Shown: piece by piece, positions 1 through 10,123 of the stretch
Layout: each line of letters opens with the position of its first letter
Position numbering within the stretch: the first letter of the stretch is position 1
Source: Zygophlyctis sp. KS116
Taxonomy: Eukaryota > Fungi > Chytridiomycota
Reading direction: 5' to 3'
Assembly (NCBI GenBank): GCA_054661495.1
Contig: BAAFSQ010000336.1
Span: 1 to 10,123 of the forward strand
Length of the DNA stretch: 10,123 nucleotides
The notes under the pieces: model-generated
What the model was told of the DNA's origin: nothing
Database searches by the model: none
What the model saw: the letters and a program-made list of their open reading frames with translations, nothing else
Translations under genes and position numbers: made by a program

Positions 1-679
1 CATCGATGCAATATTTGAAGGAACTCTTCCACTGAGTGGATTTTGTCGAAGACTTCTAAAAATTCAGCCAAGAAAACGTTACAGCTGACGTAAATTTATC
101 AAATTCCCAATTTCGGCAGGAATATTTCCAGTAAATGAATTTTTTCTCATATGGCTAAAATTTCAGTAAGAAGAAAATTACATCCATTCCAGTTTAGTCA
201 AAGTTCCAATCCATGAAGGAATCGAACCGGTGAGACTATTATCAGCAAGAACCCTTAAATTAAATCAACAAACCAATTACAGATATTTCAACTTAGTCAA
301 GTAACTAATTTCTAGTGGAATTGAACCTGAGAGTTGATTATCATACAAATCACTACAATTTTAAATTAGAAAATAATTACAGCGAAGTCAAATTTGTCAA
401 CTTTCCAATTTCAGCAGGGATTGAACCAGAGAGGCCTTTCCCGCTCCACTCAATGGCGGTAACTTTGTTTGTAGAATCACAGTCTACACCAGACATTGAG
501 CAACAAGCAGTGGCACTAGTATGAGAAGCTGAAGTAGATTTCCCCATCAGTTGCCATGATCGGACAACCCAACAACATTGAGGGGAACCTGAATTGCATG
601 AAACCGCTGCATCAGTCCCTGTGATCAATGCCGAGAGAGCCAATGCTAAGATAGAGTTCTTGAGAGATGAAGAAATCAT
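1..679 (-). CDS. Secreted plant-type (24-aa) leucine-rich-repeat protein; 3' part runs off the left edge. Exons 679-381, 352-281, 253-182, 154-83, 55-<1
   Basis: ATG at 679, then a signal peptide (MISSSLKNSILALALSALITGTDA) and a Cys-rich cap (CNSGSPQCCW...CCSMSGVDC). Manual splicing of GT-AG introns 380-353 (28 nt), 280-254, 181-155 and 82-56 (27 nt each) gives stop-free repeats: LDLYDNQLSGSIPLEISYLTKLKY / LVLADNSLTGSIPSWIGTLTKLEW / IHMRKNSFTGNIPAEIGNLINLRQ / LSLRQNPLSGRVPSNIASM. Confidence 0.93.
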
Positions 680-790: not shown

Positions 791-1225
791 TTATCGATCA
801 CTCACTAATTTATTCCATAATTAATAAAACATTTTGTTACAGGAAGTGCTCGTTATTAGTTCTTTCAGAATCCGATATTATCAATCGCTTTCAGAACAAT
901 CACACAAGCAAGCATTGAAATTCGAAGTCATGTCGCCACTGTATCCAAGGCCTACCAAGACTATAAAACATCTGGTCTGCTCTTTCCTTGCAAATCGGCA
1001 CAAACTTCCGTGGATCGCTGGCAAGTTTTTCAGGTTTACAATAGTAAGTCAAGGCATGATACAATCCTGGTAGGGGTTGCCATCATTGTCGGTCGGATTG
1101 TTTACTTTCGTATCAGTATTACCAGTAGATAGTAAGTTTTCCAAAAAAGTAGAGAAAACTTGTATTCTCTTGACAAGTAAAGGCTTGGAAGGAAATGATA
1201 CTTTACTAAAAGCATATATTCTCAT
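791..1225 (-). pseudogene. Decayed copy of the GNP(Y/F)QDC Cys-rich domain
   Basis: Minus strand reads ...LVKRIQVFST...DGNPYQDCI, a 1-nt frameshift at ~1056, then ALTYYCKPEKL...ICKERADQMFYSLGRPWIQWR, further lesions, and ...LPVT...LWNKLVSDR*. Colinear with 8182-8607 and 9329-9665. Confidence 0.8.
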
Positions 1226-1381
1226 TTTTTATTACGATGAAGTCTATTGATTATAAATTAACTGCATTCACGAATGGTCTACAAAGTAATCGGAACAAGA
1301 GAAATAGATCATTAATTAGCTCAATCAACCAGGACTCTCATCGCCGATTTGTAAGTCTAGGGGTAGTTCAAGGTTAAAAGT

Positions 1382-1652
1382 TTATTGAGATTCTTCCTTT
1401 TCCTTTTTCCATTTTGCTATTCTTTGAGGAAATACTTTTCTTTCAACAGCTAAGATTTAGAATGTTTGTAAAATTACCATAAAATGGAAGGAAAAAGAAA
1501 AAGGCACAAGCAGTCCAATATCCTACAACAAATCTAGATCTGTTTCTTATTCCAAAAGGTACAGGTCCATTTCCTCTCCAGTTGATTCCTTCAAAATGGA
1601 TTGGGCCCCATGGAGAATTTGAGCCTCTCTTTAAGAAACCGCTTTTCAACAT
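1382..1652 (-). CDS. Small single-TM protein (80 aa), probably cytochrome c oxidase subunit VIIc/yeast Cox8-like. Exons 1652-1478, 1449-1382
   Basis: Basic N-terminal presequence, then HFEG...VPFGIRNRSRFVVGYW...FFFFLPFY, resembling the COX7C pattern. A 28-nt GT-AG intron (1477-1450) restores the tail AVERKVFPQRIAKWKKEKEESQ*. Confidence 0.65.
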
Positions 1653-1764
1653 TTTTTACGCGACTCAAACCCTCAAACGCGATTCTAGGGGTTGGTATTG
1701 TGTTGAATCTAAAATCTTGTAGTGAATAACATGCTTTATATTACATTTTTATAAACTGATAAAA

Positions 1765-4240
1765 TTACCAAAAATCCTTTAAAGTGTTGAGAGTCACGTT
1801 TCCATTCAATGAACAATCAGGTACAATATATCTTCCGACTGTAGAATTATAATAGGGTGATCCACAGATTAGTCCGGGTTTGGTATGAAATGTAGTGGAA
1901 CAGTAATCACGAAGAGATAATCCATTGTCTGATCCAGCGATTCGTTTTTTTCTTTTATAGATAAATGATCCATGTCCACCATAATTATCAGAGAATGAAT
2001 TTGGAAGACTATAAATAAATTATACTTTATATACCATTTCCAGATTTCTGTGATTTCAGAATTAAGAGTTCCATTTGTATAAATATCTTTTTGTTCACAG
2101 CAACAGTTGGAAGTGAATTCAGTCCAATTTGCATATCCAGCAAATTCATATTTTGTAATTTCAATCTGGCCCTGTTCGAAAACTAGAGTTGGAATTGAAG
2201 AAGATAAAACATTTGAATTTGTGGTTGATCGGACGACTCCAGCAGTTGTAATACAAATACTTAGAAAACATGCTACTCCAAGCATTAAAAAATATTCAAC
2301 AATTCTATGGACAGAATAATTATTTAGTTCACTGTCGATAGATTTAAACATCTAATTTGATTAATACTTTACAAAATACCTGTTTATCTTGATCAGAAGT
2401 GAAATCATTGATTTTTTTTCCAGCTTTTAGTGCCTTCTTTTCTTCTTTACTCTTTTTGACTCCAAGCCATATTTGATATCCAAAAAATCCAATCGGAAAT
2501 GCAATATTTACAACTCCAAGAATAACAAATGCGGATTGAGGTATATTTACTCCATATGAAACTGCAATACCAACTCCTGCAGTGGCTGTATTTAACAAAA
2601 AACATGTTGAACCAAGTGCATTAACTAGTCCTGACGTGTATGGTCTTTGAATGATTGAGATTAAAAAGAATATGAAATAAAGAGCGCATAGGATCATCTG
2701 CTAATTAGTTTGTAAAACTTACAAGAACTCTGTCTGGGAGATAAAATCCAAAAACAGCCATTCCTACAACCAACATTTTTTGAATAAATATTACAATTTG
2801 ATAATGTCTAAACTTATACTTGTAGCCAAGATATAATATACGACAAATGTTTTGTGATTTTTCCATCTGAAATTCCCATATTTGGTTTTGATTTCCATTT
2901 GCAAACTCTGGTGCTGGGCCCTGACCAACCAACTTTGTTGATGTAGTTACCAAACGGTAAAATAAGAATGGGATCCCAAAAATCACCAAAAATAGAACAG
3001 GAATGGCTCCAGGCAAGTAATACGGATAAACATCATTCATGCAAGATAGGGATGTATCGGATATCTAAGCTTGTTAATCAAAAATTCATACCAGCCTAAA
3101 ATCGGTTTCTCCTCCACATAATTGAGAAGAAATCGTGCATGTATTTGTAAAATTACAAGCTGTACAAGTATCGGTTGTATTCACAACTCTAGCAAAAGTC
3201 TTTAAAATATCGATAATATCTAATGATTAAAAGAATTTAGATTACTTAAATCAGTTGGTATATCAAAATTTCTAACCAATTCAAAACCACTATTACATGT
3301 TTGCTCTGCACAAGCAAATACCTTAAAAATTGAATTTGTCAATGGGATGTAAAGAATTGTCATCAAAAACAGTATGAGTGATCCAATATTTGAACTAAAC
3401 CATCTCCCCGATATATGCAGAAACTTTCTTCCTGAATGAGATAAACTTAGAAAAAAATGGATTCCAATTAATGATCCAAAAACTAGAAAAAAATATCCAA
3501 TACCTGCAGATTCGTCACCATCAACTACCCAATTTGAAGTTCCCGGAGTTGGGAAATCAGCTAGTAAAACACCCAAATATAGTAAACACGAGGCTATGAA
3601 TCCATTCTTGAAAAGAACATACCACGGAGGCCTTTTATGAAGTCTTCCTTTTTTAATTGATGCAATATTTAGTGCCGCCTGGCTATCATAAACTTCATCT
3701 TGTTCAAAATCAATTTGATCTTTAGATCCATTCTTGGAAGAATCAGGTAAAAGTAATTCTGTTGTTGGACTAACTCTAGATCTTATTTCCTTTTTCTTCT
3801 TCCATTTCTTATACGCCATCAATGCATAACCTCCAGCCAATAATACCATCAATCCAGCGCCAACTCCAATCAAAATATCTGCATACTGTTTGATAAGAGC
3901 GAATGCAGTTGATGGCACCGAATATATCACAATTCCCATCAAAAAACTCCCAATGGCACCCAATCCCAATATATATAGCAGCACAATATGTATCGGTTTA
4001 AATAAAGCCAATAGAATGATCGATATAACAAATGGTAGTACATTTACCAAGATCATAACTTGGCTCCTAAATGAATAATCAAATCGCTGAAAATCTAATT
4101 TGATGGCTTGTAACTATTTTTACATGAAAATTAATTACAGCTTCAATTACTTTTTCTGTTTCAGGCGGCCACTGTATATTTACTGCAGAAATTATTCCTA
4201 GATTCTGAACATGATCAATGATTGTAGAAAAAGAATTCAT
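1765..4240 (-). CDS. ~772-aa multipass membrane protein with Cys-rich loops and a Cys-rich C-terminal domain. Exons 4240-4139, 4113-3246, 3219-3092, 3064-2723, 2697(or 2700)-2380, 2351-2035, 2008-1765
   Basis: Four ORF-track pieces join into one frame via introns of 25, 26, 27, 25 (or 22), 28 and 26 nt. Motifs IIDHVQNLGIISAVNIQWP, LISDTSLSC and LYLGYKYKFRHYQIVIFIQK resemble TRP-like (Flc/Pkd2-type) membrane folds. Many hydrophobic segments. Confidence 0.85.
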
Positions 4241-4526
4241 GACTGATCTCTTTCAGATGTCCGAAATGCGTGCGGAAATATCTATGATTCGGAAAAATTA
4301 CCTGCACTACTTATACTTTACTAATATGCGACTGGAATTAATCATCTTTGTGTCGAATCAAGATTAAACCATTTGTAAAGTTCTAAAGTTCTCAAGTCAC
4401 TCGTCTACAAAGTAAAATATTGTAAACATTGAAATATCAGATACTATTTAAAATATTCTGGATTGATAGTATAAAATTCTCTAGGTGACCTGATAGATAT
4501 TGACTTAAACTAGAAAAATAATATTA

Positions 4527-4622
4527 ATGGTGATGGTGGGGACAGTGTGGCCCAGAGGGTGCCTGATCAGGGGCAGGTCGATGCGCAGCGAGCAGTAAGG
4601 ACAGACGTAGGGAACTGCTGAG
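4527..4622. other. GC-rich island (~63% GC by hand count) in the divergent intergenic region, directly upstream of calreticulin
   Basis: Sharp compositional contrast with AT-rich flanks. Contains palindrome CCTGATCAGG (4562-4571) and a 23-codon uORF starting at 4527. Confidence 0.5.
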
Positions 4623-4635
4623 TTATAAATAAAAA

Positions 4636-6012
4636 ATGAAACTTTTATTGAACATTTTAAGTTTGACTGCTGTATTTGGAACTGTTTATTTCAAAGAAAC
4701 GTTTGACGAAGGATTATCGGACAAGTGGATTGAATCTAAATCTAAAGACGATTATGGGAAATTTATAATTTCTGCTGGAAAGTTTTTTGCTGATGCCTCA
4801 TCTTCTAAAGGACTGCAAACTTCTGAAGACGCAAAGTTTTATGCGATCGCTACTCCTTTTGAAAAGGACTTTGATAACACGGATAAAACATTGGTTGTTC
4901 AATTTTCTGTAAAGTTTGAACAAGGGATTGACTGTGGAGGCGGTTATGTGAAGATTCTACCTCCTGGAAACGATTTAACAAAATTAAATGGAGAGAGTAC
5001 ATACAATATTATGTTTGGTCCTGATATCTGCGGAAGTGAAAAGACAACTCACGTAATTTTCTCAAACAAGGGGAAAAATCATCTCTTGAAGAAGAAGATT
5101 AGTGCAGAGTCTGATGAATTAACACGTAAGTTTATCTTTTTTCAGTTTTAAACACTAGATCTTTACACTTTAATCCTTAAACCTGATCAGACTTATTCAG
5201 TATTAATTGATAATAAGGAAGTAGAAAAGGGAGATTTGTTTGCAGATTGGGATATTCTGCCTCCAAAAGAAATAAGTGATCCAAAAGCCTCAAAGCCAAA
5301 AGATTGGGTTGGTAAGTTTATATATTTGATAACAATTTACTAGAAGAGGAAATGATGGCGGATCCAGAAAGTAAGAAGCCAGAAGGTTATGATGACATAC
5401 CCGCTTCAATTCCAGATTCTAGTGCCGTAAAACCAGAAGATTGGTAATTTTAGAAAAGGGAAATACTAAATTTTTAGGGATGATGATATGGATGGAGAAT
5501 GGGAAGCCCCAAAAATTCCAAATCCTGAATATAAGGGAAACTGGACTCCAAAGGTATTCTTAAAGAGGTTATTTATAATTTAGATGATTAAGAACCCAGA
5601 TTATAAAGGTCCTTGGGTTCATCCTAAAGTACCAAATCCTGATTACAAAGAAGACTTGACTCTTTACAAGTACAACTCTGGTGCCATTTTCTTCGACTTG
5701 TGGCAGGTAAAATCCGGAACTATCTTTGATGATATTATTATCACCGATTCTATTGAAGAAGCAAATGAATTTGCCAAAGAAACTTTCTTGAAGAAGAAGG
5801 ACGCTGAGCTTAAAGCCAAGGAAGCAGTAGATGAGAAGGAGAAAGAAAAGAGAATGCAGGAAGAAAAGGAAATGAAGGAGAAGATGAAGGCAAAGAAATC
5901 TGAGGATTCTGAATCTAAAGAAGATGAAACCGAGGAAGAGAAAAGTCCCAACTCTGATGATGATGAAACTGAGGAAACTGAAGAAGATGACCAAGGGCAT
6001 GATGAACTATAA
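4636..6012 (+). CDS. CALR: Calreticulin (415 aa). Exons 4636-5125, 5159-5311, 5344-5443, 5478-5553, 5584-6012
   Basis: Signal peptide, [14 protein letters not shown] and IMFGPDICG signatures, P-domain repeats ([30 protein letters not shown]), [12 protein letters not shown], acidic tail, no TM segment, C-terminal HDEL. Introns of 33, 32, 34 and 30 nt. Confidence 0.97.
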
Positions 6013-6094: not shown

Positions 6095-6550
6095 TCAAGA
6101 AAGATTGGGTTTTATGCATTTAGCCCAAGTTTTGACAAATTGACACGAAGATTCAGAATCACAATTCGGACCATTTGATGAGTTTGTACAATATTCACCA
6201 ATCCCAGCAATTTTAGGCAGTGAAATGCATTTTCCAGGAGCAGGATCTGATGCCTTAGAATTTGTCAATGGTACAAAACAAGTTAAATCTTTTATACACA
6301 ATTTTTGTGAGTTGACTTGTCCGATCGTTGAGAAACACTCGTCTCCATTGATTGCAGTTCCAATCTGCATTTCTTGAGTTTCTACTGATGATGGATTTCT
6401 AGAAGCAACTGTTAGCGCAATTACTATAATCATGATAATTGTCAGAATTATTCCAGTAAAAATATAGATGATATTCTTTGGGAGAAAAGACAAAAAAATC
6501 GTTTGTTTGATACTAGTCTTTGTATTTTTAATCTTTGTTGTAAATTTCAT
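6095..6550 (-). CDS. Type II single-pass membrane protein (151 aa) with two Cys-rich repeats
   Basis: Lys-rich N-terminus, TM segment IIYIFTGIILTIIMIIVIALTV, then two 4-Cys units: AINGDEC...LCIKDLTC...GKCI and AGIGEYC...NCDSESSC...AKCI. Confidence 0.75.
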   Translation of the reverse strand: MKFTTKIKNTKTSIKQTIFLSFLPKNIIYIFTGIILTIIMIIVIALTVASRNPSSVETQEMQIGTAINGDECFSTIGQVNSQKLCIKDLTCFVPLTNSKASDPAPGKCISLPKIAGIGEYCTNSSNGPNCDSESSCQFVKTWAKCIKPNLS

Positions 6551-6652: not shown

Positions 6653-7617
6653 TCACTCTTGTTGAATTAATCCTACAACAATCGTAATATCATCCATTTT
6701 CCCACCTTGATAATATAATCCTTCTTGTATTGCTTTTTCTTGAAATGGAGAATACCTTTTAGTATCTTCTGCAACTTCTCTAGCCTTTTTTAACAATAAT
6801 GATGCAATTCTTGATGGACTAGAGGCCCCTTTAGTTTTTGATGTTACAGAATGAGTTAAACTTGTAATATCTTCATCCTAAAACTTTTAAAAATCCTAAA
6901 ATAAATACAAAAACATTATCAAAGAGTCCATCAGTCCCTAAAATCACAATATCCCCTTCTTTAATCACAACCTGTTCAAAAAAGGCATCAGCAGGTGAGT
7001 CTTTAGACCCAGTCCCCAATTGAAAAGGAAAATTAAAAGAGTGTTGTTGTTCCAAAGTTTTATAAATGCAAACTCCATTACGAATTAATAATAGCCTAGA
7101 ATCTCCAACATTTGCAATTTTCAACTTATTTTCCTAGTATTAATTGAAGAGAAATTACTCTTAAAATTGTAATTAAAGCGGTTGTAGAACCCAATACTTG
7201 ATCTTTAGTTTCATTTAGTAATGCATTAAGTCCCTGTTGCATAATTTTTCTAGGATCTATATTATAATAATCCAACGATGTGATTTCCTCATTTAATAAA
7301 TCGTCATATTTTTCCAATTCTGAAGAAATATAGTGCATCAGTCTCCTAGAAAATAGAGCCGGATCTGCTTTTCTAACAGAGCACCAACCGCCGACCCCAT
7401 CGGCCACCCCCAATGCATCTTTTCTATAGAAATAAGCATCTTCTCCGACTTGAACCGAGAGTTCGTTTGGATCATGTAAAGTCTTTTGGATCTTTTTAGG
7501 GGCTGCAGAGACTCCAACTTCAAATTTAAATGATTTCTTTAGCTGCCGGCTAGTATTTGATGTATGTAGATTAACTTTTAAGAGATGCAATTGTTTAATA
7601 CACAAGAATCTTGACAT
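6653..7617 (-). CDS. PTC7: PTC7/PPTC7-type PP2C protein phosphatase (302 aa). Exons 7617-7159, 7133-6909, 6877-6653
   Basis: Motifs GEDAYF, GVADGVGGW, GSTTA, ANVGDS, QQHSFNFPFQLG, GTDGLFDNVFDEDI and GGKMDDITIVV. Introns of 25 and 31 nt. Basic mitochondrial-type N-terminus. Confidence 0.93.
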
Positions 7618-8055: not shown

Positions 8056-8183
8056 AAGTCAAAAACCATTTTTTTATTGTTATCAATATCAATCGATGAT
8101 ATAATTGAGTTTTTTTGTTTTTTTCTTTAGTTTTATAGTTTTTTTGTTGTTTTCTTTGAGTTTTTAAGTATGGTTTATGACTT
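8056..8183. repeat. T-rich element, copy A, with terminal inverted repeats (MITE-like)
   Basis: AAGTCAAAAACCAT ... ATGGTTTATGACTT (14 bp, 1 mismatch). 8140-8176 is identical to 9242-9278 (37 nt). Confidence 0.65.
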
Positions 8184-8607
8184 ATGGCACTGTAATCATT
8201 GGATTGTGGACAGTCAGTGCAGAAGTGACAGGGATTTTTGTTCCGTCTGGCGTAGTGTAAAATGCATTGTTCTGTAGGGCAATGTTAGCACTTTTGCAGG
8301 CCAGGGAAGATGGTGAACCAGTAGATCCATCAAATGGCCACTTGCCACAATATATGCGAACGTCTCTCCATGGTGATGACAAACTTTTGATCATCTGGTC
8401 AGTTCTTTCTCTGCAATTTCGTATGCGATTTGCATCCCCTCTAATGTAATCGGAGTTACATATATAACCAATAACATTCAAACAGTCCTGATAGGGGTTT
8501 CCACTTGTATCGCTGTTGCAACTAAACCGGTAACCATCTAAATTTAGAGAAAACACTTGGGCTAAAATTCTTTTTCCTCTGACTGATTCAATCGAAAGCA
8601 TGTACAA
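8182..8607 (-). CDS. Open-frame copy of the GNP(Y/F)QDC Cys-rich domain with no signal peptide or LRRs; possibly a 5'-truncated fragment
   Basis: KRILAQVFS...SGNPYQDCLNVIGYICN...CRERTDQM...PWRDVRIYCGKW...CKSANIALQNNAFY...IPVTSAL. Homologous to two other loci in the window, but lacks their LWNKL ending. Confidence 0.65.
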   Translation of the reverse strand: MYMLSIESVRGKRILAQVFSLNLDGYRFSCNSDTSGNPYQDCLNVIGYICNSDYIRGDANRIRNCRERTDQMIKSLSSPWRDVRIYCGKWPFDGSTGSPSSLACKSANIALQNNAFYTTPDGTKIPVTSALTVHNPMITVP

Positions 8608-8688: not shown

Positions 8689-9048
8689 TCAAGATTTCTT
8701 AAAAAATCTCATAAATACAAATGTGCCTACAAAAGTCAATAAAACCACTAAAACCGATCCCCAGATTAGAAATGTAGTTGTCCAAGACGAAGACGTTAGA
8801 GATTTGATCTGTTTAGAAGCTTTAGAGAGTGAAATTGTCTGATTTTCTAATTTAAAAGAGATTTCTTTCAAGTTTGCATCTTCTCTAGTCAGAATATTAG
8901 AGAAATTTATAGAATTATTTTTAAGAATAGATGCTTTTTTGATTAATTCACTAGTCAGCTCTAGATCGCTATTTTGGATCTCTGAATTTACCAGCGTGAA
9001 TGGGTAAAAGTAGAAACTTATTGGTGCATCATCTTCCCAGTCAGACAT
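8689..9048 (-). CDS. USE1: Use1-like tail-anchored ER Qc-SNARE (119 aa)
   Basis: Heptad SNARE-like coil ELTSELIKKASILKNNSINFSNILTREDANL...LENQTISL followed by C-terminal TM FLIWGSVLVVLLTFVGTFVFMRFFKK, typical of Use1 C-termini. Confidence 0.7.
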   Translation of the reverse strand: MSDWEDDAPISFYFYPFTLVNSEIQNSDLELTSELIKKASILKNNSINFSNILTREDANLKEISFKLENQTISLSKASKQIKSLTSSSWTTTFLIWGSVLVVLLTFVGTFVFMRFFKKS

Positions 9049-9113: not shown

Positions 9114-9334
9114 TCATAAACCATTTTTATTTTTTTCGACGATATCAATGTTTGATTCAAGATTACTGTTTTCTTGGAGTTTTTTTTTAGTTTTCTTTGA
9201 GATTTTATAGATTTTTTGTTGTTTTATAGATTTTTGTGGAGTTTTTTGTTGTTTTCTTTGAGTTTTTAAGTATGGTTTTCTTTTAGTTTTCTAAAGATTA
9301 TATATTTTTTTGAGTTTTTTGTAATGGTTTACGA
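9114..9334. repeat. T-rich element, copy B, with terminal inverted repeats and internal sub-repeats
   Basis: TCATAAACCATT ... AATGGTTTACGA (12 bp, 1 mismatch). Internal repeated units TTTTTTGTTGTTTT, TTTTATAGATTTTT and TTTGAGTTTTT. Confidence 0.65.
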
Positions 9335-10048
9335 TGAAATGAAGGTAGACAGCTTGTTCCACAAGAGAGTCTTGGCAGATTCAATCAGTGCATCAGGAAC
9401 TGACATGATATCAGTTCCTACCGCATAATTTGCATTCAATTTCAAATTTTGGATTGCAGAGTCACAGTTTCCAATGTTACTTAGAAAATGTCCATGCGGT
9501 ATTAGAACAGAGACGGCGCCAAGTTTGCCAATGTCCATTCAATCCCCGAGTCATTTCGTCTACTCTTCTCTTGCATTCATTGACAAAAGAAACTCCTCCA
9601 TTGAGTCTTTCAGAATTGCAATAAAAAATCAAAGAATTCATACAATCCTGGAAAGGATTGCCATCTCAGAATTTGCAAATTTATCAAATTTCCTATTGAT
9701 GATGGAATTGATCCTGAGAGTTTATTGTTGGGAAGATAACTATCATTGTAAATTTAGAAAACAATTACAACTCTTTCAAATTTGTCATTTTCCAATCGAA
9801 GCAGGAATTGATCCATTGAGTTTTTAATTTTCAAGAATAGTAGTTACATTAAAGTTAAATTCTTCAGGTTTCCAGCAAATAATTACAGCGAAGTCAAGCC
9901 GGTCAATTGTCCAAGTGAAGTAGGAATTGATCGATCCCCACTCAAGTTGAGTGGGGATCGAAGCTTAATAAATTTGTTGGAACAGTCACAATCTACACCA
10001 GCCATTGAGCAACAAGCAGTGGCACTATAAGAAGAAACATCAGTAGAT
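9329..10048 (-). pseudogene. LRR + GNP(Y/F)QDC-domain pseudogene, paralog of the gene at 1-679
   Basis: Cap STDVSSYSATACCSMAGVDC matches 1-679, but the signal peptide region is absent. Same intron donor position (9886). LRR exon ~9839-9769 has a TAA, a 1-nt deletion and a lost acceptor. A 29-nt intron precedes an intact 72-nt exon 9739-9668 (YLPNNKLSGSIPSSIGNLINLQIL), joined out of frame to DGNPFQDCMNSLIFYCN...CKRRVDEM...WQTWRRLC, a frameshift at ~9485, then NCDSAIQNLKLNANY...LLWNKLSTFISS*. Confidence 0.88.
9931..9961. repeat. Perfect 15-bp-arm palindrome with 1-nt spacer
   Basis: TCGATCCCCACTCAA-G-TTGAGTGGGGATCGA. Confidence 0.95.
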
Positions 10049-10123
10049 GATTCGAACCTTTCAACTATTGGCCGCTGCTAGTAAGTTTAGTTTCGCGTTT
10101 TATGATATACAGGCGCATTTTCA

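Follow-up and report, generated by a model that had tools for sequence, protein, structure and literature searches.

Fast-evolving recognition repertoires occur in plants, brown algae and ciliates. Among plant LRR genes, ERECTA and SERK are built of one-repeat exons. The variable lymphocyte receptors (VLRs) of lampreys are LRR binders that are diversified by copying between homologous repeat scaffolds; their germline gene is empty and is completed somatically from intronless cassettes.

Brown-algal ROCO type I LRR genes (Ectocarpus and Saccharina) consist of 72-bp single-LRR exons whose order is shuffled. Alternative splicing and a concave face under positive selection have been reported for them, and a role in pathogen recognition has been proposed (PMC3341825, PMC11378527). 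Tetrahymena group III LRR genes, which number thousands, have 90-bp exons encoding 30-aa repeats and are linked to the REP retrotransposon (PMC6564038). For fungi, the accessible part of a 2010 survey describes LRR receptors as nearly absent and expanded LRR pattern-recognition receptors as lacking (PMC2939053). According to the available parts of two other sources, plant-like secreted LRRs (sLRR) occur in fungi including chytrids, such as ZtLRR and Globomyces GppLRR (bioRxiv 10.1101/2025.08.22.671746), and in a Lobulomycetales MAG the orthogroups of highest abundance are LRR families (PMC13618815). Exon structure, mosaicism, selection and swappable terminal domains are not described in the accessible text of these three sources (bioRxiv 10.1101/2025.08.22.671746; PMC13618815; PMC2939053). 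Moreover, a literature search that had most subscription papers outside its range found no fungal LRR family for which exon structure, mosaicism or selection had been described.

The window, by which we mean the whole stretch of 10,123 nucleotides analysed here, opens with a minus-strand gene (679-1) belonging to an LRR family that can be compared with each of these systems. Like the brown-algal ROCO genes, the family has 72-nt single-LRR exons, shuffled order and selection on the concave face. Unlike the ROCO proteins, which carry a ROC-COR GTPase, its products are secreted or membrane-bound and have no GTPase, and the intron position is different, with whole codons at exon bases 3-71 in ROCO genes (PMC11378527) and at 2-70 in the chytrid family. 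With Tetrahymena group III it shares equal-length exon arrays, phase-2 introns, variable repeat number, ectopic recombination and domain fusion, whereas its exon length of 72 nt, its plant-type 24-aa repeat, its dozens of genes and its extracellular products set it apart. The ascomycete sLRR examples given in the available part of the fungal sLRR study have one to six copies, in contrast to these dozens of genes. The 24-aa consensus, N-cap and C-cap are like those of plant LRR receptor kinases, receptor-like proteins and PGIPs, but the traced members have no kinase, the N-cap is specific to the chytrid, the terminal domain is an orphan and mosaicism acts at the level of the repeat. A literature search gave no confirmation of the intron position in plant LRR genes. 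As in lamprey VLRs, LRR binders are diversified by copying between homologous repeats; unlike VLRs, the chytrid family consists of many complete germline genes, as judged from assembled contigs, which give no hint of somatic assembly.

The window gene is truncated by the contig end at base 1, and its C-terminus lies outside the window (Table 1). Rereading of the sequence agreed with what the first-pass annotation had claimed for the body of this gene. Three internal exons are each exactly 72 nt long and encode one LRR each, the flanking introns of 27-28 nt have GT-AG bounds and fall between the second and third bases of a codon, and the fixed scaffold carries the variable triplets D-Y-D, V-A-D, H-R-K and S-R-Q. 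A small correction concerns exon 1 (299 nt), whose last base is 381, with intron 1 beginning at base 380. The introns are low in GC (0.14-0.33), and the reading frame of the 72-nt exons is open from the second base. By its hydropathy profile, exon 1 contains a signal-like stretch, with a peak of 2.55 at residues 10-20. Exon 1 alone appears for this gene in the bacterial-code ORF listing, and a Pfam search with exon 1 gave no match; searches for the spliced model were made exon by exon. In the paralog C957, a second N-cap module follows the 75-nt fifth LRR exon. A contig of run X1 reaches 365 letters past the window start and should contain the missing 3′ part of the window gene.

Table 1. Parts of the window gene and other pieces of the same family in the window
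Feature	Position	Strand	Remarks
Exon 1	381..679	-	Predicted signal peptide (~residues 1-24), Cys-rich N-cap with CCWxxRSW motif
First LRR unit, inside exon 1	452-381	-	
Intron 1	353..380	-	28 nt, GT-AG, phase 2, within a Leu codon
72-nt LRR exon, concave D-Y-D	281..352	-	Nearest relative C957 unit 3, 86%
Intron 2	254..280	-	27 nt, phase 2
72-nt LRR exon, concave V-A-D	182..253	-	C957 unit 4, 92%
Intron 3	155..181	-	27 nt, phase 2
72-nt LRR exon, concave H-R-K	83..154	-	C957 unit 5, 96%
Intron 4	56..82	-	27 nt, phase 2
Fifth LRR exon, truncated by contig end	1..55	-	75 nt in paralog C957
Type A fragment, upstream of window gene	1052..1225	-	
Solo type A remnant without LRRs	8185..8571	-	45% to C117 type A
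Degenerate second family member	9330..10123	-	Broken N-cap, one broken and one intact LRR (9739-9668), broken type A

Three broken family pieces (the last rows of Table 1) sit among housekeeping genes in the window, and such pieces are expected from birth and death of genes. In the degenerate second member, an LRR unit passes straight into the middle of a type A domain. Behind the stop codon of each of two type A remnants lies a low-complexity stretch, at 8108-8164 and at 9178-9267; the two stretches are similar, T-rich (on the coding strand A-rich) and perhaps a common 3′ untranslated region. Directly upstream of the LRR gene lies an intron-split gene for a multi-pass membrane protein (1869-4240, minus strand), for which three pieces searched gave no Pfam match. 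It is followed by a calreticulin gene (4636-6012, plus strand), in which RNA contigs confirm introns of 33-34 nt plus a 30-letter gap at 5552, and then on the minus strand by a single-pass Cys-rich ORF without Pfam match (6095-6550), a PP2C/PTC7-like phosphatase of two exons recognised by eye only (6873-7617) and a Use1-like SNARE whose Pfam match is under the cut-off (8689-9048).

As for the host, the first-pass annotation had spoken of a fungus-like microbe. A fragment of RPB1 clusters with environmental sequences and the chytrid Cladochytrium (100/99, the Cladochytrium row being a long branch), and the window is present in freshwater metagenomes. Through this grouping and this occurrence the host can be placed among the fungi, and we read its genome as that of an uncultured freshwater chytrid.

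Searching this genome with exon 1 gave 100 places, 75 of them strong N-cap matches with E<1e-10, and a census of 230 kb, with about 20 weaker loci left out, counted 343 exact AG-72 nt-GT LRR exons on 47 contigs. Arrays contain from 1 to 23 repeats. A large paralog family with variable repeat number, as had been expected from the window alone, is thus present. Because the assembly is metagenomic and broken into 1175 contigs (12.7 Mb in total), alleles or strains may be counted among the paralogs, and where long duplications are identical, the assembly itself could be in error. Complete germline genes are common in the family, and intact arrays are found also within contigs of 40-100 kb. Two multi-module genes, L055 (C306:519-1355) and L053 (C488), which may be alleles, have a near-identical lectin-like N-terminus and first cap but not the same LRRs and later modules.

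The general plan of the genes is a signal peptide, an N-cap exon, LRR exons, a 60-nt C-cap exon and a terminal exon, with all junctions in phase 2. The repeat unit, a 72-nt exon and an intron of 23-33 nt, is about 101 nt long, and the 24-aa repeat consensus LxxLxxLxLxxNxL(S/T)GxIP, taken from column frequencies of 295 exons, is that of the plant-specific LRR class. The codon split by the intron encodes Leu in 283 of 316 junctions. This Leu lies in the strand, and two successive exons therefore each encode one half of a binding strand. N-caps that are 94% identical are followed by 10 repeats in one gene and 7 in another, and close N-caps also pair with different termini. The whole is best explained if this freshwater chytrid has a family of plant-type LRR proteins that are extracellular and whose genes evolve by birth and death.

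The exon boundaries were supported from several sides. Translation-based detection, which is blind to splice sites, found 413 LRR core motifs (overlapping loci were counted more than once), with AG exactly 13 nt upstream in 390 and GT exactly 59 nt downstream in 385; because this spacing is fixed, the boundaries of the 72-nt exons are not a matter of chance. Among walked exons, 222 of 230 were 72 nt long and the rest 69 or 75 nt. The pattern of intron, 72 nt and donor occurs 555 times genome-wide and its 75-nt version 255 times, and from this excess of about 300 most family exons have probably been seen. In RNA contigs of run X13, which come from paralogs or close relatives, successive repeats are joined with the 40 + 32 letters expected if the intron is removed, and the same run also confirms the short introns of the adjacent calreticulin gene. 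Moreover, several intron-free ORFs among the environmental homologues join LRRs, C-cap and type A, three of them at full length from signal peptide to stop, and this is support for the gene model that does not depend on the splice calls. At L029 (G000:C406:3360-3503, plus strand), two LRR units abut with the intron exactly absent, and similar junctions are found on C306 and C4; recombination with spliced cDNA could account for such precise intron loss.

Terminal exons are of several kinds: a tail of 12-13 residues, a TM helix with a short tail, a beta-rich domain, a second cap-LRR module, and the type A domain. LRR-only members are on C53, C80, C164, C641, C701, C716 and C827, and TM-tailed members on C18, C406, C778 and C852. 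At the family level, signal peptide, N-cap, LRRs, C-cap and, in some members, one TM helix make up the architecture of an LRR receptor-like protein or PGIP-like protein. Members traced to their stop codons have type A, type B or a short tail, with or without a TM helix before it, at their ends; no kinase was found in them, and ROC-COR was absent from the traced terminal exons. Some members have ephrin/TNFR-like Cys repeats or a lectin-like domain in front. The nearest named clusters of the beta-rich terminal domain are lectin or rhamnosidase N-terminal domains, which is a lead only. In L042 (C69:1195-2454, plus strand), the C-cap passes into a Thr-rich, acidic low-complexity linker and then into a further cap-LRR module.

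Type A is a Cys-rich domain of 170-180 residues with six invariant Cys and a nearly invariant KR, which is kept in at least 90% of 30 type A sequences. All of its 22 homologues are environmental in origin. Its fold is predicted with confidence (pLDDT 84), with the KR inside a low-confidence loop (residues 36-42, pLDDT <50). Searches gave no match for it in Pfam, in the PDB (Foldseek, VIA; best Z 3.7) or in the Atlas (features, shape). Type A is a candidate new fold; the weak matches are no proof. For a full-length homologue, a single-sequence model of low confidence (pLDDT 51) confirms an LRR solenoid only, and the best PDB sequence matches of its LRR part are the plant receptor ectodomains GSO1, FLS2 and MIK2.

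Selection differs strongly between parts of the repeat. In samples of disjoint close exon pairs, dN/dS at the five concave strand positions was 2.8 (95% interval 2.0-3.8; 51 pairs) or 2.2 (1.75-2.7; 87 pairs), against 0.11-0.13 at scaffold positions and 0.8-0.9 at the remaining positions, by pairwise counting on short recombining exons. With synonymous rates of the same codons the concave value falls to 1.5-2.0, so its sign holds and its size is uncertain. Strand faces are distinct in 314 of 324 cases. A diversifying concave face on a fixed scaffold, which had been proposed from four repeats of the window gene, is therefore found across the family.

The family is probably a recognition repertoire, serving host finding, adhesion or defence, that binds variable molecules of another organism. 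Binding of foreign molecules is suggested because secretion, a solenoid like that of plant receptors, a selected concave face, remixing of repeats and high turnover are found together. The targets would belong to an algal host or prey, a parasite, a virus or a competitor. According to this reading, the terminal exon would set the output, giving a soluble binder, a membrane-anchored receptor-like protein, a lectin-like bridge or a small domain released by kexin.

An offensive system, in which the LRR would aim a secreted effector or toxin, is an unlikely alternative. KR-flanked type A would then be the cargo against an algal host or competitor, and LRR-only members would be receptor mimics, as fungal sLRR effectors are. 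Type A does follow the nearly invariant KR in a loop of low model confidence, but Golgi cleavage there would part aim from cargo unless the two were still bound to each other. Its six invariant Cys and the absence of Pfam, PDB and Atlas matches are consistent with an effector, yet it resembles no toxin fold (best Z 3.7), many members have no type A at all, and some have a transmembrane tail instead. In the accessible part of the sLRR study, phytopathogenic fungi suppress plant immunity by means of secreted plant-like LRRs, whereas the one chytrid sLRR tested there is outside the six suppressors (bioRxiv 10.1101/2025.08.22.671746). A fungal modular targeting system, in which the recombination-diversified LRR would find a target cell that varies and a Cys-rich domain without known structural relatives, once released by kexin, would act on it, seems rather improbable to us. 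If true, eukaryotes would have an equivalent of polymorphic toxins, or an extracellular immune system of chytrids would have its effector arm in this family.

Units of about 101 nt are copied and exchanged within and between genes, by which repeat number changes and binding strands are remixed with the frame intact; selection fixes new concave-face residues and keeps the scaffold. In the young subset, 36 exon pairs were at least 90% identical, against 0.9-1.9 after codon shuffling. For between-gene pairs of at least 90% identity, the neighbouring exons average 74%, and the positions in the array differ in 25 of 39. Scored against the column background, with a null and a breakpoint simulation, 72 high-identity tracts (median 71 nt) were shared, where about 2 were expected by chance; 57 were out of register and 15 lay within one gene. 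The young set alone had 62 tracts, against 1-2 in the nulls. The window gene and C957 have in common a tract of 260 nt at 96%, which is offset by two repeats and starts inside an exon. Introns are homogenised to the same degree as exons. Painting of the arrays by a copying model was dropped as overfitted, since shuffled data also gave about 400 jumps. Repeat order is thus mosaic among paralogs, as had been suspected. The first-pass annotation had named few paralogs, congruent order and a surface under purifying selection as signs against its reading; each was examined and none was found.

The unit of exchange is a different matter. Of 121 tract ends, 19% fall in introns and 38% in the middle of exons. 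Simulated uniform breakpoints placed 23-25% of the ends in introns and 39-43% mid-exon, whereas simulated intron-bounded swaps placed 64-73% of detected ends in introns and 2-3% mid-exon. Because the tract ends come close to the simulation with uniform breakpoints, exchange is homologous and in register over the unit of exon plus intron, and an in-register crossover anywhere in this unit therefore keeps the frame. The first-pass annotation had taken the symmetric phase-2 cassettes as the unit of exchange. This did not hold, as the tract ends are spread over exon and intron alike. The 72-nt phase-2 pattern is best read as a trace of clonal expansion of one ancestral unit, and we infer germline unequal crossing-over or gene conversion as the mode of exchange.

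True exon shuffling or alternative splicing as the main source of diversity, in which whole phase-2 exons would be swapped via introns or skipped in mRNA, as has been proposed for ROCO genes of brown algae, is very unlikely. Every exon is symmetric with a length that is a multiple of three, and a few tracts do extend over roughly a single exon and end in introns or close to them, but the overall distribution of tract ends disfavours the DNA part of this explanation for LRR exons. N-cap, C-cap and terminal exons are also in phase 2 and close N-caps have different termini, and phase symmetry may still be relevant to the swapping of terminal exons. For splicing, no exon-skipping RNA joint was seen in the contigs of one RNA run, which give thin coverage by fragments of paralogs.

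Variation within the population was visible at the window gene itself. Positions 103-233 occur in two versions in runs X1 and X3, with depths in X1 of 73 and 67 against 145 in the flank (contig depth being a weak measure). The flank at 879-6000 is a single contig in X1, with no difference. The two listed exonic changes, K>T at codon 4, on the concave face, and F>L at codon 7, are both non-synonymous and lie in the exon with concave H-R-K. This suggests that polymorphism is concentrated in the LRR gene. C957 was considered as the other allele of the window gene and rejected. No read variant is listed at the C957 differences 51, 52 and 78, and the haplotype bubble closes at 233, with C957 still differing at 232; the second haplotype, which has three letters in common with C957, is therefore separate from it. 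A DNA joint 111-317 in run X3 was dropped as evidence, as only 23 letters support it. Neutral turnover of a 101-nt repeat, or inflation of the assembly by metagenome strains, is hardly credible: many arrays are located at the end of a contig or on a short one, remnants are common and the two window-exon haplotypes each have about half the depth, but a dN/dS above 2 on the concave face together with 0.11-0.13 on the scaffold is impossible neutrally, short tracts with both flanks divergent would not come from chimeric joins, intact arrays lie inside contigs of 40-100 kb, and full-length spliced homologues occur elsewhere.

What is new here is that a chytrid has an extracellular LRR repertoire which is diversified by recombination and includes an orphan, candidate-cleavable domain; repertoires of this kind are known in other lineages. 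Fungi join brown algae, ciliates and plants as lineages with one-repeat-per-exon LRR arrays. The distribution of breakpoints shows that repeat exons of the same phase need not be what is exchanged, and this matters for the interpretation of such arrays elsewhere. For the chytrid, the members of this family are direct candidates for how zoospores choose their hosts or resist parasites.
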